A DNA stretch of 64,000 nucleotides from Lepidodermella squamata (GCA_047495785.1 JBLDXI010000026.1:620001-684000); one strand, 5' to 3'. Positions 2,226 through 61,938 are shown, numbered from the stretch's first letter. Numbers and translations are program-made. Notes: generated by a model not told the origin, from the sequence alone.

Positions 2226-4371
2226 ATGTTCAACTTCCTGGTCTATTGTGGCCTGCTGTCAATTTTTCATCACGCTCAAGCCGACCATGTAACAATCGGC
2301 TTCAACGCAACAATTGATTGCGGCCGTCCGCCAAATCCTGGGCCTTGCCGCGAATATTTGCCGCTCTACTACTATAACAAAACTCGAGGTGAATGCCGGA
2401 CGTTTTGGTTCGGCGGCTGTGGCGGGAATCTAAATCGCTTCACGGAGGAAGCCGACTGTCTAGCCGCGTGCTACGACCCTAAACTGCCTGGAGCTTACGA
2501 AAGGCTGCAACGAGCACTTTGGAAGCAGCAACTTCAAAATCCGATCGATGGACCTGAAACAGGCAGTGGTTTCCTGCTGCCACCAGATGTAGCAAAATTG
2601 GATCCGATATGCCGTTTGCCGCTTATAACGGGTTGCTACGATAAAGAAATCGCTAGTGTGACGAAATTTTACTTTGACACGCGACTTGGCCGCTGTTTAC
2701 CGGCCCGGTTTTGTGACGAAGAGCAGCGGCTTTTAAATCGAAATCAGTTCAGGAATTATGAAGCATGCAGAAGAAATTGCATGCCGGAAACTTACTTGAA
2801 CGAGGTTTGCTTCAAATTCTCTCGAAATATTGCGTACCCTGAAATAATTTTTCCAAAATTTGATTTGACCGTTATAACGAGTGAAAAGCGGGGTTTGGCA
2901 AATTTTCTGCTGTATTTTCCAGCAAATAGCAAAAAGTGTGTTGCCGTGAAGAGGGATGATTTTTGGATATCTACTAAGTATTTCTTGAGGAATTTTAAAA
3001 TTCGAACCTCCAGGTCCCATCCACCTCAAAAGACGAAAGGCCCCAAAGTGTCGCCTAAAAAGCTTATTGATTTAGTTTGACAAGGAAGCACTAGCTTCAT
3101 TCCAATAACATTTTTGAATATCTAGTAAGATTCCTCACCTCAGGTTACCCTAATAATCCACCTCGACTGCGCATAAGAAAATAGCGTCACAATTTATTGC
3201 GCGGTGAATTATTAATTGATGCAATAAAAAAGTTCAATTTTTTAAGCTCGCATTTTTTTCAAAATGAGCAAGTGACATCAAAACCCTACGATGTCAAACA
3301 TTCAGCCAAACCCCACTTCTCACTTTTTAACGGTCAATTGAAATACCTAAATTTGATATAATTTAATTTAAAGTGTGAAGGCTAGATCTCCAGTTAGCAG
3401 AGCCAAATTCTCACTATTAATTAGGTATATTATTATTTTTTATTTAATTCAATTTATTCATTTTTACCAATTTAGCGAATTCGATTTCGACCAATATTGC
3501 GGGCCTGATCAAAATGTGCTCTGCAACATGCAATTAAGGGCTCCCCAAAAATTTAATAGGTTAAGGTACCTCATCTCAATTTTTCGCTTTTCGTACCCAC
3601 ATATAGTAAAAAATGCGCGAGATGTGGGTAGCAAGGGATGAGAAATGCATCATTTTCGATTAGAACATTCGAAATCGCAAAAAATCAGGTACATTTTTGC
3701 GCTAATCGTAGTGCGGCATTTCAGCCAACGACAACTCAGCAATGACATTTCAGCTGAAGATTCGATTTAGGCTACAAAACTTTTGATTTTTTTTCCCCAA
3801 TTTTGTCTACAAAGTTTAATAGGTATTTCAATTTTAATCAAATATTTTTTATTTTTCGACCAACAATATTTTTCTCAATTTTATTTTTTTATTGACGCTG
3901 TTCGCTTCTCACGAAAAGTATAAATATATATGTTTATCTTCTAATTTACCAATATAGCCCAAGCTGATTAGAGGGCAAATTCTGCCGACACCGAGACCAA
4001 CACAAACAACGTCTGTAGCCGAAAAGAAATCTGACAAAGGCGTACCAGGTATCGAATGGGTGACAATGAAGCTATTCCCAAGCGACACCTACGACAAGCA
4101 AAATGCAGGACACGACGCGTCAGACGACCGGCTATTTGTTCGCTACCTCGACAAATACCGCAAATTGATGAACGGAATATGCGCGGGAGTGCCTTTCGAG
4201 TCGATGAACGTCGCGAATGAGGAGGAGTGCGCGCGGTTTTGCGACGCATTCCCACGCACCCGATGCACCTGGTTCACCCTAAATGCCGGCCTGTGCTACC
4301 TTAAAACGGCCTGCGAAGAGCGAACATTCGACGATGATGACAGTATTCAATCATATCAGCGAATTATTTAA
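2226..4371 (+). CDS. G1: signal peptide + canonical Kunitz (P1 Arg) + long-loop Kunitz-like + PAN/Apple
   Basis: Exons 2226-2804 and 3958-4371 (phase-0 GT-AG join keeps the frame). CGRPPNPGPCREY...FGGCGGNLNRF...CLAAC; CRLPLITGC...CRRNC; PAN ICAG...EECARFC...CTWFTL...CYLKTAC. Confidence 0.85.
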
Positions 4372-5418
4372 AAACAAAATATTCGCTTAAATCGATCTTT
4401 CATTAAAAAATGTAATTAAGTGAGAAAAAAGTGTAATGTTTATTATCACGCAGTTTTATATTGAAAGGCACTAGCTATAAACATATTAGTATCAATGGTA
4501 TTATTTTTTTTAAATAAAAATGGATAAATATTTGTATTAACGGTTTTTTGTCGCGGTTGCTAACAGCAATAAATGCCACCTTGTCACGCGCGACGTAACA
4601 ATAATTACGCTCTTTAGCTTTTACCACAGCTGCCATTTTTCCATCATAGGTGTTTTTGTGTTAGCTTCACTTTACAACTTTTTTTGCGCTCGTCACTTAA
4701 ACGCGCATATATATACAACATTCGTGTCATACTGCGAGAGGGCTTTTTTGAATTTCAACGATAAAATAATTATTATAAATAATAATAATGAAATTACCAA
4801 CAACAACGCACCCTTTTAGGTAAATGTTTGGAAGCAACGCGAATTTAATAGTATTGCATATATAAAATAATAATAATAAAAGAAGAGTAAATGATTTGAA
4901 TTCCATTACATTTATTTTATTATCAAATAGCCATTAGGCATGGCGTGTTATACTTTCACCTATCATGCCTCTATGTTAAGAAGGAAAAAATTTCGGCAAC
5001 AAATGGCTGTTTTGTATAAACGTGTACTCAAGATAGAGCTGTCAAAAAAGTTTCGTCTCTTAACTTTGAAATTTCCACGCACTCTGCGCGCGCACAAAAA
5101 TGGCGCCACGAGCCTGATGCAACAGGTAATATATGCGTTTTTGATTGATCTGTTTATAATATTAATATGCCTTATTAAGTGAGGCCAGATAAGTATCGCT
5201 AACAGCCGCCTCTTGTTACCTGTACACACGAAAGCAATGCCGTGCACGCGCCACTTGATGCCCGGCCCACGTTAGCCACCCTAAATCACGCTACGCTGGT
5301 CATTATCGCCGCTGGATCTACTTTTCTTTTTACATCTTTCTCGCTTCTTATATTGTCTTGTAATTTTCAAATTATAGGGTCAAATTATTTTGCTATTTAA
5401 AAATAATTTGACGCTGAC

Positions 5419-8076
5419 ATGGCACGCGGCCAACAGTCGGCGATATTCGGATTGGCTATAGCTACGGTAATATGACCTATTTTTATCGCTAATTTTATTG
5501 CCATAGGATTCGCCATCATTTAGAAAAAAGTTCAATTAAATCATCCTATATAGGCAAAATTTCGTATTGCCATTTTGAATACTCAATTTTTCCTAATTTA
5601 TTTTAGAACTATTAATTAATAAATTATTAATTTTTCATCATTTTTTAATTTTTTTAGAATTTTTTCAATATTTTTTAGGAATATCTATATTTTTCCGATT
5701 TCTGATTTGTGATGCTGAATTTTCTAGTTATTTTTATCGACCGCCATCGCCCAGACCGAAAATCCGAAATGTTCCGGTCCTCCCGACCAAGGCCCATGTA
5801 CAAGCTTCTCGACGAAATTTTACTACGACACGCGGGAGCGGAAGTGCAAAAACTTTCGTTACGGCGGTTGCGGCGGGTCGATTGACAATCGCTACGACTC
5901 GATGACCGAGTGCATCCTCGAGTGTTCGAAGGACGAACCGCGCGACTTCCAACTGTACATCTACGACCCTTACGCGCCAACAGCGGCGCCGTCGAGAACG
6001 CCGCGAGTTCTGACGCAGACAACGCAAGAAGCGCCCAAGACAACGCAGCCGCCGGTCAGTGCCGAGTGCAATCAACCGCAACCGTTCAGCGGCTGCATCA
6101 CCCTGTGGGATTTTTACACGTTCAAATTTTACTACGACACCGATTTAAAGACGTGCGCACGTATGAGATTCTGCGCGTATGCCTCGGTTTTCGGCCCGCT
6201 TTTGCCCAGTTATCGCGGGCAGAATTTGTTCAATACCGAGGAGGAGTGCCGTAGTCGGTGTGGTTTGGATGGATCGACGACTAGCTCGGGATCCACGACT
6301 ACAACTGCATCGACTGGTTCGACTACTACTACTACAACTGCTGCGACGACTGAAGCGCCAAAAATTCTCAGTGTTGGTCCCTGGTGGCAAGGCAAAGTCG
6401 CTACTGAGATGAAGCTGTGTAAAGAAATTATTTTTCATTTCATAATTTTTCGTTTTTTTCTTAAGCCGAGAAAATCGCACAGCAATTTCCGCCCGCGCCC
6501 ATATTTGTTTACCATAATTTTTCATTTTTTCAAATTACGGCCTTCGATGTGCGATTTTTCAGGTCTCGGTAAATAGAGACCGGGCTATGACAAAAAAGGC
6601 GACATGAAAAATTAGGTCAAACCACTTGATGAGCGAGACAATTTGACGCGTGCACCTTGTTTTCGCGATAAATAGCTATTGTTAAGCGCTAATTTCAACT
6701 CTCGCAGTTCTGATATCATTATTTTATATTTTTTTGCCTGTTTTTAGAAATGTTGGCTGCATGTTTCAGTGCAATATATTTGGCACCTTTTGTTTTCCTA
6801 TGGCCGTTTTGGCGTGGTCCCGTTTTTTATTAAAAAATAGCTTCAATCCAATTTTTTCATCGTCGTCGTAGACCCCTAAACCCGCAAGTGTAAAGGGTAA
6901 AGGCCTTCAAACCGTGGGGACGTTTCAAAAACAAATTCATTTAGTCATTTGGTCAATTCTTTCATTATAAGGCCTTCATAGCAAAATTGATTTCGCTTCA
7001 CTCGAGTGCATTTGAAAGATGTTACATTCGTATTTCGAAAATTACCGAAAGATTCCAAACGGGTTTTTTCGGGGTTTTTTCGCGAATTTTATTTTTCTTT
7101 GATGAAAGCGTATAGGATAGAAAATGCTTTCTGAGATTTTAGATTCCAAATCCCGAAATATTTTGAATAAATTGAAAACTTAAAGATAGATGCGCAGCTT
7201 GTTAGACCCACCGTTGAACCTGATTTTAAGATTATAAGCAAAGGGTTGGGATTAGGGGTTTAGGTCAGGGTTCATATATCAGTGTGTACAATAAAAAATC
7301 ATCATATTTCACCTAACGAGAGCATGAATTCACTTTCGGCAAATGAATTGGGGTGATTCTTTTTCGTGTATTGAGCGCGAATTCGGATTTATTTTTGAAT
7401 TAGGATACTCACAGGGCCGTTTGAGGGGATTTCACAACCTCAAAACCCAACCCAGAGCGGGTGATTTTTCTAATTATTTTCTAATATTTCAAAATTATTC
7501 TATAATTATTTTATAATTATTCTATAATAGCGAAAACTTACTATTGTTTGTTTATCCTCATTTTTTCTCATTTTTTTTTACCAAAATTAGAAGTAATTTA
7601 TTATGATAATTTTCTCCATTTTTCGGATTCAGTGACCATGCTGGACTTCTATTTGATTTTTTCCCAAAATTAATTCTCTCATTTTAATTCTTTTTCCAGA
7701 CGAGTGGGCTACAAGTCCTCGAACAACGCTCTCACCAGACGCGAATACGCCACCGAGCCCGTTGGCGAAATACCGCAAAGTCGCGTATCAGTGCTACGGC
7801 GAGATAATCGAACGATTCTTAATCAAGGACAGCCTAGAATGCGCGAAATTCTGCGAGCGCTTCCACCTTGTCGAAAAATGTAACTCCTTCTCGCTGACGC
7901 ACGACGGCATGTGCGTTCTACGTCAATATTGCTTGATATTGCCGCGAGGCGGCTACTTGGACGCGGATAACGAGGAGGGCTACTACTACCACAACGGCTA
8001 CTGGCTGCCGACGCAACTTCGAGTCACAACTTCATACGTTCGAGTCGGCGATAGCAATGACGATGACAGAAAATGA
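5419..8076 (+). CDS. G2: signal peptide + canonical Kunitz (P1 Thr) + long-loop Kunitz-like + Thr-rich linker + PAN/Apple
   Basis: Exons 5419-5466, 5728 to about 6370-6391 (phase-1 donor ambiguous, GT or GC), 7700-8076. CSGPPDQGPCTSF...YGGCGGSIDNRY...CILEC; CNQPQPFSGC...CRSRC; PAN QCYGE...ECAKFC...CNSFSL...CVLRQYC; AATAAA at 8176. Confidence 0.85.
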
Positions 8077-8361: not shown

Positions 8362-9884
8362 ATGCTACTATCATATTATTTGTTATTTCCTGCCATTTAC
8401 GGCTTATTCCAGTTAGCTGTGGCTCTTAGGCAAGGGCCTAATGTCAACTTTGGCTATGAAACTTATCCGGGTGATTATCCATATGTGGCACGGTTGGTGG
8501 TTAAATTGCCAGGGTCATATCGGTACAATAACTGTGGCGGTGTGCTGATTCATCAAAGCTGGGTGATCACAACCGCGCATTGCCTTGGATCAACGCGCGA
8601 TAACCGATTCGCAACAGGGTGAGTACATACATTTATTTAGACTACTTTTGCATTATAATTTTATTCCAAATTTATTTTATTTGTTTTTGTTTTAATTTTA
8701 TTTCAATTTTAACTTGGAAAAGGACCGATTTTTCCAGTACCGTAACGCGGGGCAACAATAAAGGGCGGAGCCATATTTTAAAATATTTAATTTCGGAAAA
8801 TTTTGAATTCCTGAACTAGGCAGCAAAGATAATTTTTCAGCGGCCTGCAAATTTGGCTATTCTATGAATTTTTACCTAATTTTTAGGTAATTAAAAGCAT
8901 ATTAGCGAATGAATATTCCAGGGTCATTTGCATGAAACCGCCAAAGTACTAATTAACCTAATTATTCTCAGATTTGTCAAATATTTGCCAAATATCCTTA
9001 GGCTTAATTATGAACAGTTAATTAATTAATTAATTAATTAATACCGGCCGTTTTAAAAAGCCAAAAAATATATTTATTTATTGCCTTATTTTCTACAAAC
9101 CAAAACACAAAATTCTCACCTGCGTTGCAAAGACAAAAGAATCCAAGGTCACCTGTCCTAGATTATCTCGCGTTACGGTTATAAACTATTTTTTTCTAGA
9201 GTTGCAATTTATTTTGCGGATTACGATGCAACAATTTATCCTGAGGAGGACGAATTCATGCAAACTTTTTACTTAGCTTCGAGATTTCGCAATGTCATCA
9301 TTCATCCTCAATATGACCCATCGACGCTCGACTTCAATTTCGCTCTCATCAAATTGCCGAGCCCTGTTCGAAATCTGACCTTGGCAATCCTGCCCAAACC
9401 GTGGACGTGTTCTCGAAATTATTATTTGACAAAATCCGGAATCATCGACAAATGCCAGCGGGTCAAGGCGCTCGGATGGGGCATAACCAGTTAGCGAAAG
9501 TTTTAATTTTAATTTTCAAAATTTTAAATTTCAATTTTAGGCAGTGGCGAATCTTTTGATTCCGATGAATTGATGCAGGAAGTTCCTCTGCGAGTTCACT
9601 CCTTTGTCGATTGTCTGACACACCCTACTAGAATAAATCTTGGCGACTTTAATCCGTCAAAAATTTGCCTCGGCGGCGATTCTTCTTCTGGCCAGGACAG
9701 TTGTGATCGAGATTCTGGCGGGCCGATTATTTGCTCGAATCACCGAGGAAGTGAAGGTTACCTGGTTGGGCTGATTTCTTACGGTGCTAATGGAGCCCAT
9801 TGCGGTACGAGAACGTTTCCAAGTATTGGCGCCAGAATTTGTGCAGCAATGCATTGGATAAACGAAGTCATAACAAAATATTAA
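8362..9884 (+). CDS. G3: secreted trypsin-fold (S1) protein with Asp102->Asn and Gly193->Arg; probable serine-protease homolog
   Basis: Exons 8362-8618, 9200-9489, 9541-9884 (phases 2, 1). Signal peptide, PYVARL, CGGVLI...TTAHC, TLDFNFALIKL (Asn where DIAL Asp is expected), GWG, DSCDRDSGGP, ARICAAMHWI. Confidence 0.9.
8739..9179. mobile_element. Possible degenerate MITE in G3 intron 1
   Basis: 11-bp inverted termini ACCGTAACGCG (8739-8749) and CGCGTTACGGT (9169-9179) bracket most of an intron that is long for this window. No clean target-site duplication. Confidence 0.4.
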
Positions 9885-12515: not shown

Positions 12516-14139
12516 ATGTTGATGAAAATTGTTCTTTTTTCATCGCTGGCGGTAAGTCATCTCTCATTTCGATGTCGCACTCGTTAATTGCGGCATTTAG
12601 ATCTCGGCTCTAGGTCAATCGAGTACGATCTGCTATTACACCCCCGATACTGGGTCATGCCGCCTTTTTCATACCATGTACTATTACGACATAAAAGAGC
12701 AGCGCTGCAAGCAATTTACTTGGGGGTGAGAATTTTCAAACGCGTCGCCCGCACTGTTGCTATATTTTTAGACGCTATCTGATACAGTGGTTGCGAGGGC
12801 AATGAAAACAGATTCATCACCGAGTCCGAGTGCGTTCGAACATGCCAGGGCCCGAAAAATGGCCCAACCATGGCGCCGGTTTATTACCCGCCAAAGATCA
12901 ACAGCGGAACTACAGACCAACCGCCCAAGCAACCACGTAAAAAATTTTAAGGTGGCATTTTTTATTATATTTCTCATTTTTTTAGCGTCTTATTGTTTGA
13001 GGCCGCCGCCAGATAGTGGCTGCTTGGTTTATCGGTGGAATTCTGTTATCAAATTTTACTACAACCACTTTTCGACCCGATGCTTACCAATGGAGGTCTG
13101 CGCGAATGGCATGGCTGTTGTCAATATTCCGGGGGCTGACAACATTTTTTCGTCCGAACAAGAGTGCAGTACTCGCTGCGAAGTACAAGCTACTTCAGTG
13201 ACAAATTCGAACGGACAAGTTATCGCCGCACCAAGTATTAGAGTAAGTCTTCAATTTCTCACGTGATTTGAATTTTGTGCAAATTTGTCATTAACAAATT
13301 AGGGAATTTTGAATTTTGGATTTTTCTTTGAATTATAATTTTTTGAATTGAAATTCATGAGATTTAAATTTAAATTTATTTTGGAATTTTATGAAATTTA
13401 TTTTTTACATTCTTTTCGAATTAGAGAGACGTTCTTTTGCAATCGATGCTGGCAGGTCCACTGACAACGGATCCTCGCCCACCCAGACTAGACTGGGATA
13501 CCACTACAACGACAACCACTCAGCGACCAACCACGACGACACGCCGCTTTGAAATGCCGCCTCAAGATATACAACAATGGATGGTACCCCAGCCGAGTAA
13601 GCGCTAAATTAAAAAATCCAAATTCTTCAATTTTTCAATTCAATTGAAAATTCAAATTCAATCTTCAATTTAAATTTTTCAATTTAAATTTAAATTTTAA
13701 ATTTAATTTTTTTTAATTTCAGATTTAATTTGATTTTCAATTTTTCATTTTTCATCATGAAATATTTTTATTGAAAATAAAAAAAATAATGATTTTTTCG
13801 GAATTTTGAAAGACATTTCTGTTTGTAGGGGGTGCACTGAGTTTGTACCGGCAAGTTGCGATGCATTGTTACGGCGATGTGATCGAAAATTTCATGGTAT
13901 CACCGGAAGAATGCGCTCAGCTGTGCGAGACCTCGCAATCGCTATCATGCCGCGCGTTCACCATCATCGGCGACTATTGCTATTTGAAAAACACGTGCCT
14001 GAGCCAGCCTCGCAACGCCTACGACACGGGCACCAGCGACGGCCAGTACTACCTGGGCCAGTCGCCGCTAAATGTCAACAACAACGCCGGCCAACAGTCT
14101 TGGGTGCGCTTGCGGACAGCGGGCACATTCAAAAAATAG
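12516..14139 (+). CDS. G4: signal peptide + canonical Kunitz (P1 Arg) + long-loop Kunitz-like + Thr-rich linker + PAN/Apple
   Basis: Exons 12516-12551, 12601-12725, 12788-12936, 12986-13242, 13425-13596, 13829-14139, all GT-AG and phase-compatible. CYYTPDTGSCRLF...WGGCEGNENRF...CVRTC; CLRPPPDSGC...CSTRC; PAN HCYGD...EECAQLC...CRAFTI...CYLKNTC. Confidence 0.85.
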
Positions 14140-14946: not shown

Positions 14947-17818
14947 ATGTGGTGGCTATGGCTCTATGTGGCATGCGCTCAACTGATCTCTACCGCTTCA
15001 GCTCAAGGTAAGTCTGAAAAATATTAAAAATTCTGAAATATTTATTCCAAATTTAATTTTTCAATTTAAAAAAAAATAATTAATAAAATTGTATTAAGGT
15101 GGAATTTTTCTAAAATTTTTTTTATTAGATCCTGGATGCCGGCAAATTCCGAAAAATGACTGCAATTTTTTCACAAATTTTTACGCTTCACTTAAATGGG
15201 TGTACGATTGGGGCAGTCAAAAATGCTGGCCCATTCGATATTGCGGCAGTGGTGATTTGAACAACAACGTTATGTTCCTCATGAAACTCGACTATTTCGG
15301 CCTGAACGACCCTGTCAGCGAATCGGGAAGTAACAATCTATTCGATGATGAGAACACGTGTTTATCAGCGTGCAAACCCCCCGTTGCCGCGAAACCTCAA
15401 CCGAAACCCACTCCAGCGGCTGAATCATCCGCACCAGTCACCCTACCTGGGCCGCCTAAAACCGGCGAAGCAAAACCAGTCGAGCCGACCATTCTTGCGC
15501 CGGTTAAAGAAATGACGCAGACTGGCAATTTAGCATTTGGCCAAAAAGTTCTGCCGACTACAACGGGGCAGCCCTATATGCCGTATGTCAACATTCCGAA
15601 TCACCCGTTCAACGCTTTGGCTCAAGTTGCGCCGTTGAAGCCCGAGCCTCAAAGCTTCACCGGCGAGCCGACTTTCCCATTTGTACCCGATATGGAACCA
15701 TTTGCGGCCCCACCGGCTGCAGACCCGATTCCGAAGATTGAACAGCCCCAACAGTTGCAGCAGTTGAAAATGGTGTCGAATAATGTCCAAAAGCTTCAGG
15801 CTAACTTCAATGGCCCGCAGCATTTCCCTTACGTGCCGAGTATGGAGTTTCTAGTATTTCCAACTCCAGCCCCGCCGGTTGTTACGAAACCAACGACTGT
15901 GTCGACGACTACAACTACGACTACAACGGTATTACCTGAGAAAATCGCGAATTCTTCTGCGAAAATTGGACAAGACCTCCCGCCGGCTGGGGAAACTTTC
16001 CAACAACATCAAATGCAGCCTTTGAAGGGACAACCCATTGTTGACCCTGTTTGGGATCGGATTCGATGTAAGTATTTTTATTATATGTATTCCATCTTAA
16101 ATTCTACATTCTACCTTATTAAAATTGGCTCCTTTAGTTAGGAAAAACTAGGATACTTTTTTTATTTTGTTCGTGCAGAGCTCGAAAGATTAAGGGGTTT
16201 TTTCTTTCGACGTGTAGAAACCCGCTTAAACACGCGTTGGTGGGTTTTTTGAAATAAGAAAACAAAGGGCTTATCATAGTCTCGTTTGCCAGGTTGCTAG
16301 ATCTTCATTTAGATACCGAAAGAATTGTTCATCGTCATTTAAAACGACGTATTCACGAAAAAAACATGAAACCTTGGGCAAAAATGAAGGGGAAAATATG
16401 ATGAAAACGATAATATTCAAGTTTCAGGCGAGCAGACACCAATCTTGACTTGGGGCGATCGAGGCAATGTCTCTTTTTAAATAATCTCACTAATATCAAA
16501 AAATTAGAAAACCGGTAGTAAATCTACCTCTAATGACAATTTTCGAAGAACATTATCTTTCTTGTTAACGCTTTAATTTCGGGTCAGACGAATTTTGTTC
16601 GGTTCTCCGATTGATCCATGAAGATATTTCGATACGCCGGACCCAATATGAAAGCGTTAAACTTGAAACTTTCTTATAGACTTTGACCGTGTCAAATGTC
16701 GTTCCGTCACTTGGAAAATTGATTCTCCGCATTTTCTTTGCTAAGAGTTTCAAATCTCATCATTTCTTGATATTTCATTCCTAGTTCACATGGGATTAAA
16801 AAGTAGATACTTATGCTCAAACGTTCCCCCCTGAAGTTTCGAATTATAATCTTTTATTTTATTTGTTTCTCCGAATTTTCGTTTTCTCCGACTGCAAAAC
16901 CGAGGGTCGCATAAGTGCTTTCAAAGCTGGACATTTCAGCAAGAAATAGAAACAGCCAATTTATCTATCTCATTGGTCCTTGATTTCCAACTTAAGCGTT
17001 ATCATCTTCAACGAAAATACAGCTAATTTCAGGGAGTTGGGTTTAATTCAATTTTGTTATTGTCCATCTTACATCGGCTACAATATTGTCCTTCTTATTC
17101 ATTATAAATCCATTTGACTTCGTAGTCAACAAGCATCATGAGCCAATTATCCCTGTTGTTGGGAAATATGAAGCTGAATGTGTACATCCACAGTTGTTAC
17201 ACGGCTTGTACAAGAGGGTAACCAACTGTGTTACCCCGGTGCTCGGCCAATTATGAATTAATTGCGACCGTCCAAATTGCGCAAATTAAGTGCTCTGACG
17301 TGGCTTCTTTTCAAAAAAGCCGCCGGAATAATAGCTTAATTACTTTATTATCAAGCCTGTCAGTGGTTAAGATGACCTCGGAACTCAAAAAGTGGTTCAT
17401 GCGTAAACAAGCACTGGAAGGAAAAGAAAAATAAACAAAACAAAAATTGATCGAATTTTGTTCTGTCCTAGATGGAGATTTCGAAGCTGTCCACCGCAAT
17501 ATGAAGCGAATCGGCATTTTGCTGAAATTCCGTCGCATGGATGCGCACGAGCGGTGCATGGGTGACATTATTGAAACGTTCGCGCTCGACACGGCTCAAC
17601 AGTGCGCGGAAATGTGCGACCAGTTCGAGGCCTACGACTACTGCGGAGCGTTCACGATCCGCGCGAATAGCGGCCTGTGCGACCTGAAGCGCGACTGCCA
17701 TTCCGGTAGCAATTGGATAGACGCGGAGGAGGTCTACGCGAAGGGACGATCAATTCTACTTCCTGCGCCTGGCGAGGAATCCTACGTCCGACTACCTAGT
17801 ACTGGAAAGTTGATGTAA
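14947..17818 (+). CDS. G5: signal peptide + long-loop Kunitz-like + long Pro/Gln/Thr-rich region + PAN/Apple
   Basis: Exons 14947-15007, 15129-16067, 17472-17818 (phase 1, 1). MWWLWLYVACAQLISTASAQ; CRQIPKNDC...CWPIRYC...NNLFDDENTCLSAC; PAN RCMGD...QCAEMC...CGAFTI...CDLKRDC; AATAAA at 18001. Confidence 0.85.
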
Positions 17819-18467: not shown

Positions 18468-20132
18468 ATGATGACAGCAGCAAATTGCAACGTGATGTCG
18501 AGCATCATTCCCAGCTTTTTCGCCCTATTGACGCTTCACCAATTGGTGGGCGCGCAAAACTATCCGGCAGGTCATGACTGCTACAAAGCCCCGCCTATCG
18601 ACGGGTGCCTCAATGCCCCTTACTTCCTAGGCGCCAATATCGGCGTCAAGCGGTACTACTACGACGCGTTTCGGGAGAAATGTTCCATTGTTAACTATTG
18701 CAACACTGGATATCGGCCAAATGTTGCCGTTAACCTCTTCGATACCGAGCGCGATTGTGTGAGGATATGTATGAAAATGGCAACTGGAACATCGACAACC
18801 CTCACACCTATCGCGAATCAAAGAGCGACTACACAAGCTCCAAGAGTTGTAGAACGCGTCGCATTCTGGCCCAGTGAGTTTGCTAAATTTTCTAGCAATT
18901 ACCGCTACTGCTACTGCTGCTACTAATTACGTTAACGTTAATACTGCTCAAGCTTTTCTCTCAATGAATGAAAAAGAAACTGTCGATGACCGCAATCTCC
19001 CTGCTTACGTTAATCCAACTTCGGTCGTCTTAAAATTGGTCTCAGTGAAGTCTCATTGACGAATCCTTTTGTTTGACGTGAGCTAGAACAATTTCAAGAG
19101 CTCTCAAGTTATTTGGAGCTCTCAAGGGCCCTTTATTTTATTAAATTGTTAGGATTCTTCCACTTGCCGTGGCTTTGTTCATCCTCTTATCTCCTTTCCT
19201 CCATCTTTCTTTCATTCTTTCACCACTTCTTAAGAACCGCTTTGCTTATTCTTCTATTGCTCACCGACCTTGAAATCCAAATTGAGAATGCTGTGCCGAA
19301 TAGGAATTTGAAAGACTCGATTGTCAAAGAAGTAAGAAGAAGAGACCAGGCAGAAGTTATTCTACAGAAGCAATTCTTGTCCCATTATTGCCATCATTAG
19401 GAGTCATATATTGGTTGAAAATGAAAACGTTCAATTTCGTGAGCTTTTTCATTTTCGCGCCAAAGTTTCTCCAGAACTGGAGATGAAGAAGTTTACGAAA
19501 TAGATTGGTCATATGACTCCTAATAATGACGATAACGATATCAGGAATTGCGTCTGTAGAAACTTCTGCCAGGCCCTGTAAGGGCGCTTTTCTCGTGTTA
19601 TGCTTCTAGCTGAACACTCGCTAGTCACGAAATGAAAGATGAATGCTGACTGCGTCTGGATTTCTCGAACATGCTTATCGCAAGCTTTTAGCTCTTAAAA
19701 AATGCCATTTTACTGGATACTTATTGATTTCGCTTGAAATGTAACAACATTTGTTCTCTTTTAGGGGCCAGTTCGAGAACCGCGTATCCCGAGTGGTGGC
19801 CCCAGTCCCAAACCCAGCCACCCAGCACCCCCTCCACCCTTACAAGGCTCTACCGCCGGGTGGCCCACGAATGTAACGGCGAAGTCATCGACGTACTCAA
19901 CATTCGCGACCCAGAAGAATGCGCTTCTTTCTGCGAACGGTACCAGGAAGAAAGCTGTGACGCATTTACTCTAACCTTCAACAGCCAGTGCTTATTGAAA
20001 AGCGGCTGCGCACCCGGGCCCAGCACTTACGCTCAAGGCACCCTCGACGGCTACATCATCGTATCACCGAATAACAGTCCAGACACCTATCAAGTGACAT
20101 ATGGAGGCCCATCTTGGCAGCGGGTGATGTGA
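18468..20132 (+). CDS. G6: signal peptide + long-loop Kunitz-like + Thr-rich linker + PAN/Apple
   Basis: Exons 18468 (or ATG 18495)-18873 and 19765-20132 (phase 1). CYKAPPIDGC...RYYYD...CSIVNYC...NLFDTERDCVRIC; PAN ECNGE...EECASFC...CDAFTL...CLLKSGC. Confidence 0.85.
19344..19575. mobile_element. MITE-like element with about 65-bp terminal inverted repeats in the G6 intron
   Basis: Left arm CCAGGCAGAAGTTATTCTACAGAAGCAATTCTTG...ATTAGGAGTCATAT matches the reverse complement of right arm ATATGACTCCTAATAAT...CAGGAATTGCGTCTGTAGAAACTTCTGCCAGG. TSD not resolved. Confidence 0.7.
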
Positions 20133-20931: not shown

Positions 20932-22353
20932 ATGACTCGCCCAGTCGCGCCCTCTTTGTTTTTCTGCGTCGTCGCCACCTTTTGTTTCAGCCTAACAACT
21001 GCGCAGAATGACCTGGCTGAGCCAGTTACGCAATCTGGAGGCAATGATTGTTATATGACTGTAGAGGCTGGACCATGTCGAGGCTACTTCCCTATGTACT
21101 ACTGGGACCCTACCACAGCAAGCTGTAAGCTATTCATCTACGGCGGTTGCCAAGGCAACAGGAATCGCTTCCTTAATGAACAAGACTGCAAGACTAGTTG
21201 CGCTGGTCGGGTTCTACAACCAAGAGTCACATTTAGTAAGATTTGCAATTTTTTAGAATTTTTACTGATTTTTTCTATATTTTAGACCCAGCTTGTGGGA
21301 AATTGCCAACGACGAATTGCAACCTTTGGGATTTCTTCTCTACGATGAAATACTATTATGACACGTCAACCAGGAAGTGCCAAACAACTAGGTCATGTTC
21401 GAGACCTAATTACGGAATGGGCTTCAATCAAGACCAGCGCGAAGATAATTTGTTTGACTCGGAATTCGAGTGTCTGCAATACTGTTTAGAAACGAAGTTG
21501 TACCCAGCCTTTGCTTACTCCCCTTCTCAACAAAATCTTAAAACCTCTGCAAACGTTAATGTCCAACCTCAGAGACAGGTCTATGTACCCCCGCCTATGC
21601 TGGCCGTAGCTCCGCCGTCACCAACACCGGTTTACACCATAGCCCCTATGCCTCCGCAGCAAAATTCGCTCAAAACCTACGTCCAACCTTCGAGTCTCAT
21701 TTCACCACCTCAAACACTACCTATCGATCAGCAACCTCGACCTTCGCAACTATATCCATCGCTTTACGAGCCTCAGAGAACTAGAATACAGGTTGGAGAT
21801 ATGTGAAGTTTTTGAGGATTGATCTAATTTCTTTCTTTAGACTCAAATGCCGACCTTGTTGATCACCATTACGCAATCTCCAATGGGATTCGGTAGACCG
21901 TTTCCGCCTGTTACTACAACAACTCCTGCTCCGTTCGCAAACCGTCAAACTACGAAGAGTCCATTCGTCGATCCCAACCTGAAGCCCATTGCGGAATGGG
22001 GTAAAACAGCAGGATCACTACTTCCACCGAGAATTTCCGACTACCTCTCAACCGAAAGACCTCGTTCAAACGTGCTAGGCGATGATACCTATGTTGAAGT
22101 TGACTACACTTGCTACGGCGATTTGCTGGAGCAATTCGTGCAGAATTCAGCCTCAGAATGCGCGAAACTCTGCGATGCGTACAACATGTACGGCTGTAAC
22201 GCTTTCACGCTGAAGGATGGCGTCTGCTTCTTGCAAACCGGTTGCCCAGCTGATACTACGCGCATGAATTTCGACGAATTCGGCTACTACCTCGGCAACG
22301 ATTTCGACTCACGGAAAGGAACGTCCTGGATTAGACGCCGCTTACAAAAATAA
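20932..22353 (+). CDS. G7: signal peptide + canonical Kunitz (P1 Arg) + long-loop Kunitz-like + Pro/Gln/Thr-rich region + PAN/Apple
   Basis: Exons 20932-21235, 21286-21791, 21841-22353. CYMTVEAGPCRGYF...YGGCQGNRNRF...CKTSC; CGKLPTTNC...CLQYC; PAN TCYGD...ECAKLC...CNAFTL...CFLQTGC; AATAAA at 22472. Confidence 0.9.
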
Positions 22354-34201: not shown

Positions 34202-36643
34202 ATGATGAAGGCAAAATTTTTAATGGCCATGCTGGTACTAGTTTTCAGATGGGTGCCTGAAACTACGGCTGCTGCGAGATATTTGGACTACACATCACCG
34301 ACCGACCCTCAGGAGCATCCTTGGCTTGTAATAAAAATTTCGAATTTTTTTAAAAAATTTTCAAAACTTTTTAAAGGCCCAACTTCGAATTTCTTTCATC
34401 AACAAACCGCCTAATATTTGCTCCGGAGCGCTGATTTCAGCCAGATTAATTTTAACCGCCGCCCATTGCCTGTCGAAAGACGGAATTTCGGCATCTAGGT
34501 TAATTTTATTGATTTCAAGGCTGATTTCAGCTTTCATCCTGTTATAGGATCAACGTCATTCTAGGCAGTCGCAATTCAAGCCGCCTTAACGAGCCGGGTA
34601 CAATCAATGTCACCCTGGTTGCTAATGTCCTCTCAGTCGCGATCCATCCTAATTTTCAAGTTTTCGGGAGTGGGTACAAGAACGATTTTGCCGTAGTAGC
34701 CCTGCAGAACACGGTTAACCTGACCTCGGCGATTTACCCACTACGGCTGCCTCAGGATGACGTCTGCGAGGCGCAGGGTGACTACCAGGCTAATATTCAA
34801 GACTTCGATTCATGCCTCATGGCTAGTGCTGTAGGCTGGGGCGTGACTTCTAACGGAACTCGGTCTGATACGCCTCGTAAGACTAACATCGCCATGCGGG
34901 CCTACGATTTCTGCACCGATTTCATGTCTGTATCCACCCTGGAATTCTCGCCTGATCTTATGTGTGCCGGCGGCAGTTCAGACGAGGATGATCAGCGGAA
35001 TACGTGCCCTGGCGACGATGGCGGGCCGTTGATTTGTATATCTGGCCCGGCTAATTACCAGTTTTTGCTCGGGGTCTACTCGTATGGCGACCTGCCGTGC
35101 GGGGCGCCGATGGGCGGCGACTACCCGGCCGTCTACGCCAGGGTGTGTGCGGTTAATAACTGGTTGAAAATGATGTTTAATTTATTCCCGGCCGTTTCGA
35201 CGCTGAACCGGATTCCGGAGGCGAATTTTACAACTTCGACTCAAAGCACGGCTCAACCGACTGGGCAGACGCTGGGTATCCTAGACCTAGGCACTACTCG
35301 CCGCCCTACAACTACTACAACAGCATGTACGACCTAGTTTTCAAAAATGAATTGAATTTAGATTATATTTTATCAGCTACGGGAAAGACGGAAGAGGATA
35401 TTTTTGATGTTTTAAATCCGACTACGACTACAGTAAGACCAAGGACCAGAACGACGACAACATCAACGACGACAACTACAACTGCAGCGACTACAACAAG
35501 TGGTATTTATACATACCGTATTTGTTCCTATAAGGCCGGGCTACTAAAATTTCAACCTCGATATTTTGAAATTTTCAAAAAATAATTTTGGTGAATCGTT
35601 TATTTTTGATGTTTTCGTACCGACTTGACTCCTCAACCCTGGGCTACTATTAGTGATGGGCGATCGTTAGTGGATCCGAGCCGATCTAATATCTATAACC
35701 CCTAAGACCTGGGCTAATATTGGAGATGAGAGATTATTGGCGACTTGGTTACTATTGGAACAAATATTGGAGGTGAATAATGTGGGACGTGTTCGCATCA
35801 AGTTGTAGATCGTCCACATTCCAGATGAGGGCAACAAGAGAAATGGCAAAAAATCATCAAAAAACGAAGAGGTTTCCCGGATTATTCCAATAATTTCGCG
35901 CGCAAACCATGAGTTATTTGAATCTATGGTGCAGATCTGACCCCGAAATTCTCAAGTTATTCTTCGAAAATCGATTAAATTTCGAAATTCGCGAGCTCAT
36001 GGCGATATTTTTTATTTAATCTTGGTCGTCCAAATGCGTGTTTGCTTCCTTCTATAATTTTTTTAATTATTTTGATCATAACCCTGAATATCGGTCAAAA
36101 TGTATGTTGTATTTTTCGCAAAATCCTGGTTTTATCCGGATTTTTCTCATTTAACTTCGAAGTTACGCCAGAGGCTTCAACAACTCCGTCGGCAGCGACG
36201 ACTCAAATTCCAATAAATACGACTACACGAGCTTCAACAACTACAACAAGGATAAATGGTAAAATGGAGATTCTAACCAAAAAAAATTAATTTTTTGATT
36301 ATTCAATATAGTTATTGTGCCGATAAATGCTCCCCCATCTCCCCCTATTCGTCCAACGTCAAGTTAGTCTTAGTCTAATGGTTTCGTCGTCGAAACTGCC
36401 TTTCTTTTTCATTTTTTAGGATGTGCAAAGCCGATACCATCCGAGCCAATCATCTGCACCCGCGCATTTTCGACCCGCTACTACTACAACACAGCCCGAA
36501 AAACGTGTGAATCCTACCGAGGCTGCTTGTTATCCGCTAAGGAAGAAGCCGAAGTGCTCGACAACGACTTCTCATCACTTGTTTCGTGCCGCGTCGCCTG
36601 CGCCACCGCCTCAAGTTCCATCATTAACACCGATTACCGATAA
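34202..36643 (+). CDS. G13: secreted trypsin-fold pseudoprotease (Ser195->Asp) + Thr-rich stalk + one C-terminal Kunitz-like domain
   Basis: Exons 34202-34327, 34377-34498, 34548-35326, 35377-35502, 36163-36258, 36420-36643. HPWL|AQL, CSGALI...TAAHC, NDFAVVAL, CPGDDGGP. The last exon, in a frame not in the ORF track, reads CAKPIPSEPIICTRAFSTRYYYNTARKTCESYRGC...NDFSSLVSCRVAC. AATAAA at 36646. Confidence 0.85.
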
Positions 36644-48038: not shown

Positions 48039-50291
48039 TTACCAGAGTGAACACCGTAGTCCATTTGCCATTTTAGCCTTACCGGAACAATGAAATGCTC
48101 TCAGAAAATCATTGTTGCCATTCAGCCTAGCGTTGACTCGAACTTCAGGAGGCGAGTGAACATCGACCTCAAGTATGTAGGAAGCAGCCTGTGGAGTTCT
48201 GATGTAGCACGAAAGCTGGGCAAAAGATAGGAAAAAGAGCTGCTCGGAGGTGAAATAGCTGATCTGATCGCTTTCCATTTCTGTTTTACTGTCATTTAGG
48301 TGAAGTCGAAAGGCGTCAAGAGCTACTTTCAAGCCGCCATCATCTGCGAGATTTTCGGACAAGGTTTGCTCCCCATTGACAGACTTACCGTTGATGGCGT
48401 AAGAGCTGAATTTATCAATGTAACAGTTTGTTTTGTTGAGGAATTCAGATTTCGACTCTGAATCCCACCAGTCTCTCAAATTGCCGTTTTTGTCATACTG
48501 GCGGCCTCGAAAATCGAATCCATGAGTCACCTGGAAATATGTTCCTTAAACTGATTGGGGAAATGTCGCCTCAATTACCTCATGGCCGATGATGCTTCCG
48601 ATTCCAGCAAAATTAACTGCTTGGGGTAGTCCTTCATCGTCACGGTAGAATGGCTTCCGTAAAATCGCGGCTGGTAACATGACAGCGTTGTAAGATGGGT
48701 CATAATACGCGTTTACTTCCAAAGAATTGAAGGTTATCAAGGTGGGGTCTGAGATCCTCCTCAAATTCTAGAAGTAAAGTCGTTGAAAGGTTAAGATTAG
48801 GTTAGTCCGTCAGGTTTATAGCCTTACTGTATAACTCAGCTGTCTTCTCCATCGCTGAATGTATATACTGTTTTGTACGTAGCTATCTCCAATATTTATC
48901 ACACGAAATTTAGCTTCCATTGCAGTTAGATTTAGAATCCTGCTATCGTAACCCACTTTCGTGGACATCGCATCCAATTTTTCGATAGCAAGCCTTCTAA
49001 CTTCATCATCCATCCATGTTGCTCGCTGCAGCCTCGCTCGAAAAGCTGATCTTATCTTGGCGATCATTTCCGCGGTCCTGTTTTTCGTCTTAGCATCGAA
49101 ATGCCTTTGGATGAACATGTAACTGAGGGGCTCATTCATATTCTCGGCAGTATCGCTAACGCAGGTCTTCCACCTTTCAGGCAAACCCTGTCGACCGACT
49201 AAAGCTTCGTTCAACTTATCGGCCACAGCTTTGACTACGCCACCAAGAGCAGGCGCTTGCTCAGATATAGTTCGATAAACCAAATAATTTTGCAGAATTT
49301 TTCGACCCTTTGTTGAGTTTACATACTCGCTAACTAAGGTGCTGAGTTTAACGAAGTAAGATAAACCATACATTACGATTTTATCACCCTCACCCACTGA
49401 GACTCCTGCAGGTCTAAAAACGTCGTTCAAGAATTCGGTCCAATTCAAATAATTGAACCTATTTTGTAAGAAGGAGACATTGGCTTTGAAGTAAGTTGAG
49501 CTTCTATCATTTGACTGAGCTAAAGTTATCATGGCCTCTGCCCTTTTCTTTTCAAATTCTACAACGTCTATAATGCTCGAATTTTCTGATGGAACTTTAT
49601 TTTGCAGAGCTAGTTTGCTGAAAGAGTACAGCTCATCGACTAAAGAAATGAGATTCGGACTTGTAGAGACTGATCTGTTGAAGTAAAGATTACGAGCATT
49701 ATTCCCTAACAACAGAGATCCCTGTTGTAGGAGGACAACGTAATTTGATACGTTCTTGATATCTCTAGAAACTGACAGGGAAAACAGCCCACCGGAGCCG
49801 AAATTATGGCGCTTGATCAACGCAGAAGTTAGCGACCAATTTGAGGGTAATTCATCAGTGGAATTCAGGAATATTCCGCCGCCCAGATCTACCAATTTTC
49901 TCAGTGAAGCTAAGCTCGAGTTAGATATTTTAGATTCTGCTAAGCAAGACGCGTAGTAACGGCGAGTCTTTTGGAGGACCGAATCATTCTTTGAGGTAGA
50001 ATTTCTGTCCTCTAAGATTTGTTTCATCAGATTTGTTACTTCCTCATTCGCCAGTGTTAATTGGCTCAAACTCGTACGACCGGTAGGTAGAACGCTTTTT
50101 TTGACGAACCCACCGCATGCATAGCTGTAAAAGTCTTCGCATGGATCGATGGAAAGATCTGTTTTGTTTACCACATCTTGGAGAAGTCGATCGCAAGCCT
50201 CTGATGAGCAAGTTTTCCCAGCTGCAAGTCCATTTCCATGATGAATTAGCAAAACGGAGAAAAATTGAATGAAAAAGTCAGAGCTAAGCAT
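48039..50291 (-). CDS. M13 neprilysin/ECE-like zinc endopeptidase, probably secreted (about 714 aa)
   Basis: Exons 50291-48828, 48767-48579, 48530-48039 (2145 nt). DPCEDFYSYACG, VNAYY, GHE|VTHGFD (HExxH across an intron), ENLAD, HSPPEVRVN, C-terminal CSLW. Short hydrophobic N-terminus with no cytoplasmic tail. Confidence 0.93.
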
Positions 50292-50943
50292 TATCAGACG
50301 AACATGTTGAAGTTAGTGTTAAGAGTTCATGCAGTACTGGAACAATTGGGTTTTGGCGCTACTATTATTTTATATCACACCTAACACATTTTTTTCATCT
50401 TCTTGTTAAGCTTCTCTTTCTCAATGAAAGAAAACGAGCGTTTCAGTCACTAAATTAATCAGAGCGCTTTATTACTAGAGTTTGTGGATTAATTACTTTC
50501 TTACAAAGCTGGTTAATCTCAGCAAATTACGATCTAGATTTTTCGGAGTAAACAAATGACAACTACGTTATTTTCCTTAACATCCTCACCCTCATGCAGC
50601 CCATTATGATAAACCGTTTTGTAGCTTAATTTGCCTCTCATTTGCTTGTTATTGAGATTTGATGCGCATCTATGAGATAAAACGCGGTTTAATGAAGAGT
50701 CGTAAAAGCATAGTATTATTCGTGTGTTTGCGCCAATTAGCCGCGGATTCTAATTGTTTTTACATGTATATAATAATTCATGAGCTGAGGAGCGTCATTT
50801 TTCATCGCCTTACATGCTTGTTTATATATACTTCATCGGGAACCGGTAGTCACCAACTCACGAGTCGGTACAAAAATGTCAACTGACATTTGAGACTGAA
50901 CCATACCCGTTGGTGCTAAAAGATTTGACATTCTAAGCAAACA

Positions 50944-53054
50944 ATGAAGCTTAATTGCTCCATACTTCTATTCCTATTACTCGTGGGCCATTCAATGGCT
51001 CTCTCTGAGAAAAATAAGGAGATTTACGGGTTGGAAAAACCTCCTATCACTCAATCTCAGTCGCAAGAGTTCCCGTGGCTCGTGAGTTGATATTAGACCT
51101 CTAAATTCTATTGAAGCTAATAACATTTTATAGGCACGACTGACTTTCAATTTGAAAGAGCGCCAAGTACCCGAATATTGCGCTGGAACGCTTATTTCTG
51201 AAAATTGGCTGCTCACCTCGGCTCAATGCATCACTCGTGCTCAACTACTTGATGCCATCAAGTAAGACTGTTGAAACCATTCTATTACTTTAAATGAAAC
51301 CGTTTCTCATTAGCTATACAGTTCAGTTTGGCAGCATTATCGAGCAAAGCTCTAGAACGTATACCTTTAACCTGTCAAACATATTTATCCACCCCAACTT
51401 TAAATCGGGGGCTGACTTGAGCTTCGACTTCACCATAATCAAGCTACCTCAGCCCGTAGAGCTGAAAAACAATGTTAAGCCCGCGGAACTCCCTAGTCGA
51501 GATTTATGCACCAATAACGCAGATTTCGAACCCTTTTCATCGGGCTATGACAACTGTCTCAGTTCTGTAACTGCTGGATGGTCAATCGACGATATCAGCC
51601 CTCCTATTCCTATCATGAAAATGGCTCAAAGCCTTCTTGAGTTTGAAAAATGCTCCGAAGAGGGCGAAACCAGCAGCGAAAATAGGTTTTCTCCCTCTAA
51701 ATTATGCGCTGGGGCAAATAACGAAGACATCGACGACCAATGCTTGCAACTTCCTGCTAATCCTATGGTTTGTACTACAACCCCAACTGGGGAAGAATCC
51801 GGCAAGATTTTGATCGGAATTTACTCATATGGCGAATGTGGAAAACGAAGCACTCAGCAAACTTTGAGTGTCTTTGCAAGAATCTGCGGTGTATTGGACT
51901 GGATCGAGAGTCTTATCTCAGCCCCAGAGCCAAAATCAATCCCTGAGAACCGCAAATGCGATGAATCAATCGATGACACCCCTGCTCCACCTTACTGCAA
52001 GGAAGCAAGTATTCGCTACGTTTTCAGCAAGTCGCTTGGAGGCTGTATTCAACTCCTCAGCTGTTCCGAAGGGCACGAGAAAGGTTTCGAGAATGAGGAA
52101 CAGTGCAAGAAAGCGTGCACAGGGCAATCCTCAAAAGAAATCATTCCGGTTTTCAACGACGAGTCAACTGAATTGAAACCTTCCACTGATCCTGTGAATC
52201 GGTGTTTTGCCGAGCTGAAGAGGGACAGCGATTACGGAAGTTGCGAGCAAGCCTATCGATTCTACTTCAGCCAGATAAACAGCCGATGCATCCGCTACCC
52301 AGGGTGTGTGAATAATGATTTGGCTGCCAATAATTTTGGGACGGAGGAAGAATGCATGTCGGCCTGTCAGTTGATCTACAAAATTGACCCGCTAACCAAC
52401 GACCCTCCGCCATCTGTAATTGAAAGTGGAGCCGCGGTCATTCCTCAAAACCCAGAGCAGAGAAGCAGGGCTCTAGTCCGACAACTCCTCCCGCCATATC
52501 GAACACTGTTCTCCCCTCCGAAAAACAATCCAAGTAAACTCTGACATTTTCCTGAACAATCTTGCCCAATTTTCTGTTTCTTAGGGTGCCATCTCCCGTT
52601 GGTCAATGGTGTTGATTTCGGCGAATGTCCCAAACCGACAAGCAGTTGGCGGTTCTACTGGAACAGATCGTTAGGACGATGCTTAGGTTTTCATGGTTGT
52701 TCGAATGTTCCTCGAAACAACTGGGACTCTGAAGGTGAATGTCTCAAAAATTGCCGTGACTCAGACTTGGTAGTGTCTCTCGATGATGCGGAGCCTGTTT
52801 TAGTCAGCATTCGAGGTCCTGCTAGATGCTCAATGCAGCTAATCAATGGTTTGGATTTCGGCGGCTGTGGAAAGGAGACGCGGTATCTCTACAGCATATC
52901 TCTTCAGGCGTGTATAAAATTCAGAGGCTGCGTTAACCCGGATGGCGGTAACAACTTTGCTTCGAGACGTGAATGCGAGTACGTTTGCGAAGTCGCAAGA
53001 TCACGCAAAAAAGGCATCCAAGTCAAATCAATAATCAAAAACTTTTTGAGATAA
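50944..53054 (+). CDS. G14: secreted trypsin-fold pseudoprotease (His57->Gln, Ser195 lost) + four Kunitz-like domains
   Basis: Exons 50944-51081, 51134-51261, 51314-52533, 52585-53054. FPWL|ARL, CAGTLI...TSAQC, FDFTIIKL, DQCLQLPANP; Kunitz-like CDES...CKKAC and three D[FY]G types (SDYGSC, VDFGEC, LDFGGC); AATAAA at 53085. Confidence 0.87.
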
Positions 53055-61892: not shown

Positions 61893-61938
61893 ATGGGTCA
61901 CTGCAATGTCTCCTAGCACGGGTAAATCTAATCAATGC

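Follow-up and report, generated by a model that had tools for sequence, protein, structure and literature searches.

The genome of Lepidodermella squamata raises the question of what a long run of adjacent genes, all encoding secreted proteins assembled from the same few modules, might be for. The locus concerned lies in a stretch of 64,000 nt (JBLDXI010000026.1:620001-684000, on the contig called C26 below), here referred to as the window, in which an original prediction had placed a tandem cluster of 14 genes (named G1 to G12, with a G9a and a G9b, and G14) for mosaics of Kunitz, PAN/Apple, mucin-like and trypsin-fold (S1) modules. The reading that we consider the most probable, though by no means assured, is that of a lineage-specific (most likely gastrotrich) tandem cluster of secreted mosaics serving an extracellular coat or secretion. 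The genome assembly searched comprises 121.2 Mb in 151 contigs; the published assembly of the species is described as having 122 Mb, 157 contigs and 43 % GC, in a paper that never mentions introns (PMC11660948), a silence which suggests that the assembly carries no gene models. The window itself (G+C ~40-44 %) is compact animal DNA with introns of ~50 nt, GTRAG donors and T-rich acceptors ending in YAG.

To count the modules independently of Pfam thresholds, hidden Markov models (HMMs) were derived from the copies in the window itself and searched against all six frames. This census yields 30 Kunitz-family modules (5 of type A, 7 of type B and 18 of type C) and 13 PAN modules, to which Pfam adds a 14th at 23313-23477, while the S1 domains number four (G3, G10, G12 and G14). 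All Kunitz and PAN modules lie on the plus strand, the same HMMs giving no match on the minus strand, and Pfam applied to stop-to-stop open reading frames (ORFs) finds Kunitz_BPTI, PAN_1 and Trypsin at the positions where the original prediction had put them. These modules are carried by 13 consecutive genes at 2.2-36.6 kb and by G14 at 50.9-53.1 kb, all on the plus strand; the count of 13 is plausible, since the frame of G9a is closed after its third PAN by a stop at 25226-25228, and G9b starts separately, with a signal peptide of its own at 25685. A signal-peptide-like N-terminus is present in 14 of 14 genes, on short first exons in G2 (5419-5466) and G5 (14947-15007), and each last exon encodes a polar tail directly after a PAN or Kunitz module, so that no membrane anchor is seen in any of them. 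Thr-rich tracts, which span 30-127 residues and consist of Thr, Ser or Pro to at least 60 %, are found only in plus-strand exons of seven genes (G2, G4, G5, G9a, G9b, G10 and G12), and the mosaic proteins are probably O-glycosylated. The census and Pfam together thus turn the predicted figures of about 30 Kunitz, 14 PAN and four trypsin folds into exact ones and bear out the rest of the proposed layout, i.e., 13 consecutive plus-strand genes plus G14 with signal-like N-termini and no transmembrane anchor, built from four kinds of module only and arranged as a Kunitz-PAN block followed by a pseudoprotease/multi-Kunitz block.

Two families can be told apart by the order of their modules. In family 1 (G1, G2, G4, G7 and G9a) the signal peptide is followed by Kunitz A, Kunitz B, a mucin/Pro linker and PAN, the latter in three copies in G9a; G5 and G6 have the same layout without the type A Kunitz, and the PAN-only genes G8 and G9b, which contain mucin tracts, go with this family. 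In family 2 the signal peptide is followed by an S1 domain, a mucin tract and type C Kunitz modules, 11 in G10, one in G12 and four in G14; G11 has two Kunitz C without an S1 domain, and G3 an S1 domain by itself. PAN and S1 are never combined in one gene of the cluster, and no kringle is matched by Pfam.

The three Kunitz types differ in how far they depart from the canonical module. Type A has the spacing C-8-C-15-C-7-C-12-C-3-C with GGC.GN.N.F, and its five copies score 52-73 bits against Kunitz/BPTI (PF00014, gathering cut-off 21 bits); four of them have Arg at P1 (in order Arg, Thr, Arg, Arg, Arg, as read from the sequence), and such P1-Arg heads are likely to be trypsin-type inhibitors. 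Type B has six Cys and an FYYD core; the loop that follows Cys2 is longer, and as many as 40 residues lie between C4 and C5. The Pfam cut-off is exceeded by the G6 copy alone (21.1 bits), the other six being linked to the Kunitz family by the in-window HMM and hhalign. An AlphaFold model of type B (predicted local distance difference test score, pLDDT, 75.6) has two strands and a helix (E17-24, E29-36 and H55-61) corresponding to the Kunitz hairpin and C-terminal helix, and its top 50 fold matches in the PDB are all Kunitz domains (template-modelling score 0.52-0.67). Type C is recognizable by the signature D[FY]GxC, the motif GNNF and a middle spacing of C-5-C, with a longer C1-C2 and a shorter C3-C4 loop; its Pfam scores are mostly 22-48 bits, two ORFs falling below the cut-off (29122-29961 with 18.1 bits and 33085-33573 with 16.9 bits). 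The six Cys are kept in 29 of the 30 modules, that at 51990-52118 lacking C1 in the aligned piece, whereas P1 is non-basic and the loops are remodelled in types B and C as opposed to type A. The profiles of types B and C match each other with 97.5 % probability, and types A, B and C are homologous. The Kunitz C exons that were checked have a length that is a multiple of three and start in phase 1, i.e., they are symmetric 1-1 exons, which is the classic layout of shuffled extracellular modules. In a genome-wide profile search type B was found only at this locus and in its copy on contig C25 (described below), and type C also in a multi-Kunitz gene on contig C74. The latter gene (L004, G000:C74:602400-604550, minus strand) contains at least six D[FY]GxC modules separated by Pro/Thr linkers, and has no S1 domain among its ORFs.

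Outside this genome few members of the family were found. An exhaustive search of 1.84 billion representative proteins with the type B profile gave 110 matches, nearly all of them long multi-Kunitz proteins of nematodes and others; the true family members among them are two, both encoded on metagenome contigs, namely P0016 (404 aa, intronless), with Kunitz A, a Gln-rich linker, Kunitz B, a Thr linker and PAN, whose best match in the window is G2, and P0014, with Kunitz A and Kunitz B. The locus of this relative (L008) has, on one strand, three Kunitz A-Kunitz B-PAN genes and, directly after them, a pseudoprotease that carries four Kunitz C modules and has Phe57, Asn102 and Trp195 at the catalytic positions. 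Its genes are 25-45 % identical to those of the window cluster, as against 79 % for hillarin, the gene neighbouring the cluster, and the P1 residues of its type A modules are Arg, His and Ser. Synteny in related genomes, which had been proposed as a check, is thus recovered in part: Kunitz-PAN genes stand beside a pseudoprotease-Kunitz gene in the same order and strand in one relative, but the flanks differ, since the relative's cluster is bordered by claudin and EB-like genes and not by M12B, and none of the window's neighbours (M13, pseudoprotease genes) surrounds hillarin on the relative's hillarin contig. The pairing of the two families is therefore kept where the surrounding synteny is not, and their adjacency argues, within a single species pair, for some constraint on linkage. 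The flanking matches in L008 lie on the minus strand at 102-791 and 14830-19400 and consist of weak EB-module matches and a claudin-like gene.

Other searches brought no further members to light. In word-indexed homologue searches the G10 exon 27834-29303 had no match, and full-length P0016 retrieved only itself and one Kunitz match; the G14 exon and P0016 led, in the ESM Atlas, to generic trypsin clusters or to a weak nematode Apple cluster (0.76) and to no Trypsin+Kunitz or Kunitz+PAN cluster; a scan of metagenome contigs with P0016 gave no further relative; and the family was not found in any annotated proteome searched. Nothing describing Kunitz+PAN+mucin or S1-Kunitz fusion layouts was found in a literature search.

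None of the four S1 domains has the full His57/Asp102/Ser195 triad. Pfam recognizes the Trypsin fold (PF00089) in G3, G12 and G14, while in G10 it is identified by blastp to the relative's pseudoprotease and by motifs, Pfam having given only Kunitz for 27834-29303. The changes in the triad (listed in the table) imply that all four domains are inactive or crippled. The predicted designation as pseudoproteases suits G10, G12 and G14, which lack the Ser195 motif, but G3 less well, as it keeps His57 and Ser195, though with Asn102 and Arg193. The best PDB match of G3 is a D102N trypsin mutant, its Asn aligning to residue 102. Asn102 is common to G3 and the relative's pseudoprotease, G3 being a natural "D102N trypsin".

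Among the PAN modules, Pfam (PF00024, cut-off 21.4 bits) scores four ORFs above its threshold (3958-4368, 22878-23531, 24323-25225 and 25890-27086) and three slightly under it (17.9-20.8 bits), and gives no match in two, while all 13 copies found by regular expression match the in-window PAN HMM with E values of 1e-14 to 1e-19. In the PAN tree the second and third PAN of G9a pair with those of G9b, and the terminal PANs of family 1 group with the PANs of the relative. The genome contains at least 142 PAN matches; many of those elsewhere in the genome are identical-score pairs on different contigs. One further gene of related composition (L015, C26:596549-600056, plus strand) lies 22 kb upstream of the window; its two PAN modules are preceded by a split Kunitz A, a weak Kunitz B and a long linker rich in Ser, Gln and Asn, and between it and the cluster lie two nuclear-receptor genes and the M12B gene.

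The cluster genes are expressed. A sequencing run with RNA-like behaviour (X1) covers G9b at 25900-27043 and ends before 27100, and the intergenic stretch 27100-27700 has nothing in X1 and full coverage by a DNA run (X2); in G10, an X1 GT..AG joint at 31120/31171 skips a 50-nt intron (31121-31170) and joins two Kunitz C exons, the other ~50-nt introns of this gene having been placed by reading frame. The low-depth X1 contigs on G10 (27755-31231) also show many "opposite strands" joints ~50-170 nt apart, which, occurring at 27.7-31.2 kb in single contigs of depth 2.6-6, are taken as assembly artefacts. The whole locus is moreover present in a second, collinear copy (G000:C25:2334900-2393000) with 96-97 % nucleotide identity over at least 58 kb, which may be either the other, very divergent and uncollapsed haplotype or a very recent large duplication. 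Across 33 exon pieces compared between the window and C25, every ORF is open in both copies. The synonymous divergence (dS) is about 0.09-0.115, and the ratio of nonsynonymous to synonymous divergence (dN/dS) is 0.083 for the cluster, 0.062 for family 1 together with the PAN-only genes, 0.10 for family 2 and 0.014 for the neighbouring hillarin. The low value for family 2 indicates that its "dead" proteases are under purifying selection.

Table. Genes of the cluster and the two neighbouring metalloprotease genes (positions counted from the first nucleotide of the window).
Gene	Positions	Strand	Content	S1 catalytic residues	Basis
G1	2226..4368	+	signal peptide, Kunitz A 2319-2471 (P1 Arg), Kunitz B 2610-2780, PAN 4180-4314		Pfam Kunitz 68 bits, PAN_1 24 bits; in-window HMMs
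G2	5419..8073	+	signal-peptide exon 5419-5466, Kunitz A 5770-5925 (P1 Thr), Kunitz B 6067-6261, Thr tract 6244-6384, PAN 7792-7932		Pfam, in-window HMMs
G3	8362..9881	+	secreted-type S1 domain alone, exons 8362-8618, 9200-9489, 9541-9881	His57, Asn102, Ser195; also Arg193, Asp189 kept	Pfam Trypsin; splice sites by frame; residues by motifs and PDB alignment
G4	12516..14136	+	Kunitz A 12631-12845 (P1 Arg; 62-nt intron inside), Kunitz B 12994-13179, Thr tract, PAN 13867-13998		Pfam, in-window HMMs
G5	14947..17815	+	signal-peptide exon 14947-15007, Kunitz B 15137-15373, long Pro/Thr linker, PAN 17555-17698; no type A		Pfam, in-window HMMs
G6	18495..20129	+	signal peptide, Kunitz B 18579-18770, Thr linker, PAN 19872-20009		Pfam Kunitz 21.1 bits on type B; in-window HMMs
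G7	20932..22350	+	signal peptide, Kunitz A 21049-21201 (P1 Arg), Kunitz B 21294-21485, Pro/Gln linker, PAN 22111-22245		Pfam, in-window HMMs
G8	22778..23531	+	signal peptide, PAN 22941-23078, Thr linker, PAN 23313-23477		Pfam PAN_1, two stretches
G9a	23730..25228	+	signal peptide, Kunitz A 23838-23990 (P1 Arg), Kunitz B 24072-24233, three PAN 24407-25171, stop 25226		Pfam, in-window HMMs
G9b	25685..27089	+	signal peptide, PAN 25929-26069, 26475-26612, 26898-27038, Thr tract 26667-26825		Pfam; RNA-type contigs
G10	27558..32250	+	signal peptide, S1 pseudoprotease, 11 type C Kunitz 28812-32220, Thr tract 30390-30770	His57, Asp102, no Ser195 motif	in-window HMM, motifs, blastp
G11	33130..33970	+	signal-like start, Thr linker, type C Kunitz 33295-33468, 33770-33952		Pfam, in-window HMM
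G12	34202..36640	+	signal peptide, S1 pseudoprotease, two Thr tracts, one Kunitz 36422-36601	His57, Asp102, Ser195 to Asp (GDDGGP)	Pfam Trypsin 77 bits; alignment to kallikrein-4
G14	50944..53051	+	signal peptide, S1 pseudoprotease, four type C Kunitz 51990-52988	His57 to Gln, Asp102, no Ser195 motif	Pfam, in-window HMM
M12B	2..1045	-	ADAM/reprolysin-like, N-terminal 348 residues in window		no Pfam match on this piece
M13	48042..50312	-	neprilysin-type peptidase		Pfam Peptidase_M13_N 277 bits, Peptidase_M13 137 bits

Two adjacent secreted metalloproteases had been counted with the cluster. Both genes exist, the M13 gene with an HEVTH zinc motif read across an inferred intron (a predicted splice) and the M12B gene with HELGHGFG and a disintegrin-like Cys-rich part upstream of the window (L014), but the latter lies mostly outside the window, and its hydrophobic tail makes the attribute "secreted" doubtful. 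Their membership in the system is not borne out: both are on the strand opposite to the cluster, in a stretch that also holds unrelated genes (hillarin and nuclear receptors), and neither M12B nor M13 is present within 6-7 kb on either side of the relative's cluster. We find no grounds for including them in the cluster.

In the window beyond G12, a gene-poor stretch of 7 kb (36700-43600) has no Pfam-recognizable ORF (39276-39815 was scanned, with no match) and is ~97 % conserved in the C25 copy. It is followed by the hillarin gene (LIM-transglutaminase-KY; 43655-47638, plus strand), whose single exon encodes 1328 aa; the N-terminal part of the protein is long and disordered, and a metagenome protein is 79 % identical to it. 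The best named matches of hillarin are in nemertean, annelid, brachiopod and mollusc (45-49 % over the full length), with rotifers at 37-44 % and nematodes at ~42 % over 80 % coverage, a ranking that would place the genome among the Spiralia. A nematode affinity, which nuclear-receptor arrays and the EB-like matches in the relative had brought into consideration, was dropped in view of this ranking, which a rotifer affinity also fits less well; patterns of the nematode SL1, Oikopleura and bdelloid rotifer spliced leaders had no match in the genome. Downstream of the cluster, at 55700-63400 on the minus strand, four or more nuclear hormone receptor genes form a tandem array, with a zf-C4 match and a CPKCRIDKCFAVGM-type P-box region, and two more such genes lie upstream of the window (C26:606964-607635 and 612935-613570).

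The cluster can be compared with several known systems. The closest known architecture is that of vertebrate HAI-1, in which a PAN/apple-type MANEC domain and two Kunitz domains are joined in one chain; inhibition is chiefly due to the first Kunitz, while the second has diverged and plays a modulatory part (PMC12940448). Family 1 is similar in that a canonical P1-Arg Kunitz is followed by a remodelled one and accompanied by PAN. The order is however reversed (Kunitz, Kunitz, linker, PAN, as opposed to MANEC, PKD-like, KD1, LDLRA, KD2 and a transmembrane span in HAI-1), PKD-like and LDLRA domains (Pfam) and the transmembrane span are missing, a mucin/Pro-rich spacer is found instead, and there is no sequence relationship beyond the common domain families; the PAN-plus-two-Kunitz design of HAI-1 has arisen independently in this lineage. 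The prediction that these architectures belong to no named family accordingly stands for the annotated proteomes searched, but not for the combination of a PAN-type domain with two Kunitz domains as such, which vertebrate HAI-1 already has. Secreted Kunitz-only and PAN-plus-mucin proteins are also known from nematodes, where BLI-5 and MLT-11 act in the apical matrix, i.e., cuticle and precuticle (PMC11304992), and LET-653 is a PAN-mucin-ZP protein of the luminal matrix (PMC4970718). Nematode multi-Kunitz proteins are the best general matches of the type B profile; the cluster differs in having no ZP, Lustrin or thyroglobulin domains, in joining Kunitz and PAN in one chain and in being spiralian, with no orthology seen.

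Family 2 resembles the inactive S1 homologues in being a triad-less trypsin fold under selection that is fused to binding modules. Such homologues (HGF/MSP, haptoglobin, protein Z and those with a clip domain in arthropods) combine an inactive S1 fold with added binding modules and are kept under selection. In contrast with them, family 2 adds 1-11 Kunitz modules and a mucin tract, and has no kringle, clip, CCP or Gla/EGF domain. Proteins of the factor XI/prekallikrein and HGF/plasminogen types join PAN/apple and S1 in one chain (with kringles in HGF), which the cluster never does. The Kunitz arrays of tick saliva, venoms and helminths share with it a local Kunitz expansion and a variable P1, but are mostly short, soluble proteins with one or two Kunitz modules, as opposed to long PAN/mucin/dead-protease mosaics. 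The cluster family is new to the databases searched, but represents a familiar sort of tandem secreted-protein array.

On the favoured reading, the cluster would have originated by local gene duplication and exon shuffling, which would be sufficient by themselves to explain why the families sit together, and its products would be parts of an extracellular coat or secretion such as an apical matrix or cuticle, mucus, a gut lining or an egg coat. Through its PAN modules each molecule may be tethered to glycans or to further proteins of the matrix, the mucin tract would serve as a hydrated spacer, and the type A Kunitz head with P1 Arg would block trypsin-type proteases. Kunitz B and C, in their remodelled form, and the dead proteases would be binding modules, neither enzymes nor classical inhibitors. 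Several points weigh against this interpretation. The coat or matrix role is inferred from domain content alone, and the variation of P1 (Arg and Thr here, Arg, His and Ser in the relative) would also fit soluble inhibitors with changing targets. Some exon joins are long and predicted (3077 to 3958 in G1, 6573 to 7699 in G2, 16068 to 17471 in G5 and 18874 to 19764 in G6). Nor is the co-expressed gland product of the original prediction supported. X1 has contigs of both gene kinds, whose depth, a poor measure, is ~40 on G9b vs 1-6 on G10, a more than tenfold gap that does not favour tight co-expression, and a crude k-mer test of the 200 nt before the start codons, against shuffles and random window sets, revealed no upstream motif common to 12 genes beyond chance.

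These last points are among those expected if there were no functional system at all, the locus being a tandem array that evolves by birth and death. Its members would be of common ancestry and exchange exons locally, but each would act by itself, in a tissue or at a stage of its own, and their linkage would simply reflect local duplication. To this possibility we assign a minor though appreciable probability. The homology of Kunitz B and C and the symmetric phase of the Kunitz C exons imply that co-location follows from the origin of the genes, PAN matches are numerous genome-wide, contig depths are unequal, no common upstream motif was found, and members are interspersed with unrelated genes, as seen in the Kunitz A-Kunitz B-PAN-PAN gene at C26:596.5-600.1 kb and in G14, which lies beyond hillarin and M13. 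An independent array accounts less readily for the fact that in the relative, where the flanks differ, the two families again lie side by side with order and strand unchanged, an observation from one species pair. A role as soluble regulators of digestion or defence, in which the Kunitz heads would keep in check trypsin-like proteases, endogenous or microbial, of the gut lumen or body surface and the inactive proteases would be cofactors or decoys like the serine protease homologues of arthropods and protein Z of vertebrates, appears unlikely. In its favour, most type A modules have P1 Arg, P1 varies among paralogues and species, G3 retains the Asp189 pocket of trypsin-type enzymes, and the divergence from the relative (25-45 % identity vs 79 % for hillarin) is fast, as is typical of proteins facing outside targets. 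However, dN/dS between the two copies is low (0.06-0.10), with no sign of diversifying selection at this scale, and mucin tracts and PAN tails would be needless in a soluble inhibitor.

A more specific form of extracellular material, in which an inhibitor lock is reused as a structural joint, seems to us very unlikely. The dead S1 domains of G3 (with its Asp189 pocket intact), G10, G12 and G14 would be sockets, and the Kunitz modules of the same and neighbouring products the plugs, so that chains with one socket and up to 11 plugs would cross-link into a self-assembling, protease-resistant gel or coat tethered by the PAN-mucin proteins; on this view, the two families would have stayed linked in a second species because they function together. 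The least probable reading is the gland product of the original prediction in its narrow form, a secretion of a single gland such as a temporary adhesive or glue, saliva or venom. It is suggested by domain content only, and chaetonotid gastrotrichs have adhesive tubes; Cys-rich modules and glycosylated spacers recur in animal adhesives. The 14 large genes in three different layouts speak against it.

Almost nothing is known at the molecular level about the secretions of gastrotrichs and other meiofaunal spiralians, for which this locus provides a defined, conserved and constrained set of 14 candidate coat or secretion genes. It contains a new Kunitz subtype (type B) confined to one locus, as well as chains uniting an inactive trypsin fold with up to 11 Kunitz modules, of which no description was found, and shows clearly, in an animal that is not a vertebrate, how extracellular mosaics are built by the shuffling of phase-1 exons. 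If it is true that the dead proteases bind Kunitz modules, the cluster would represent a new way to build a matrix; otherwise it would be one more lineage-specific secreted array.

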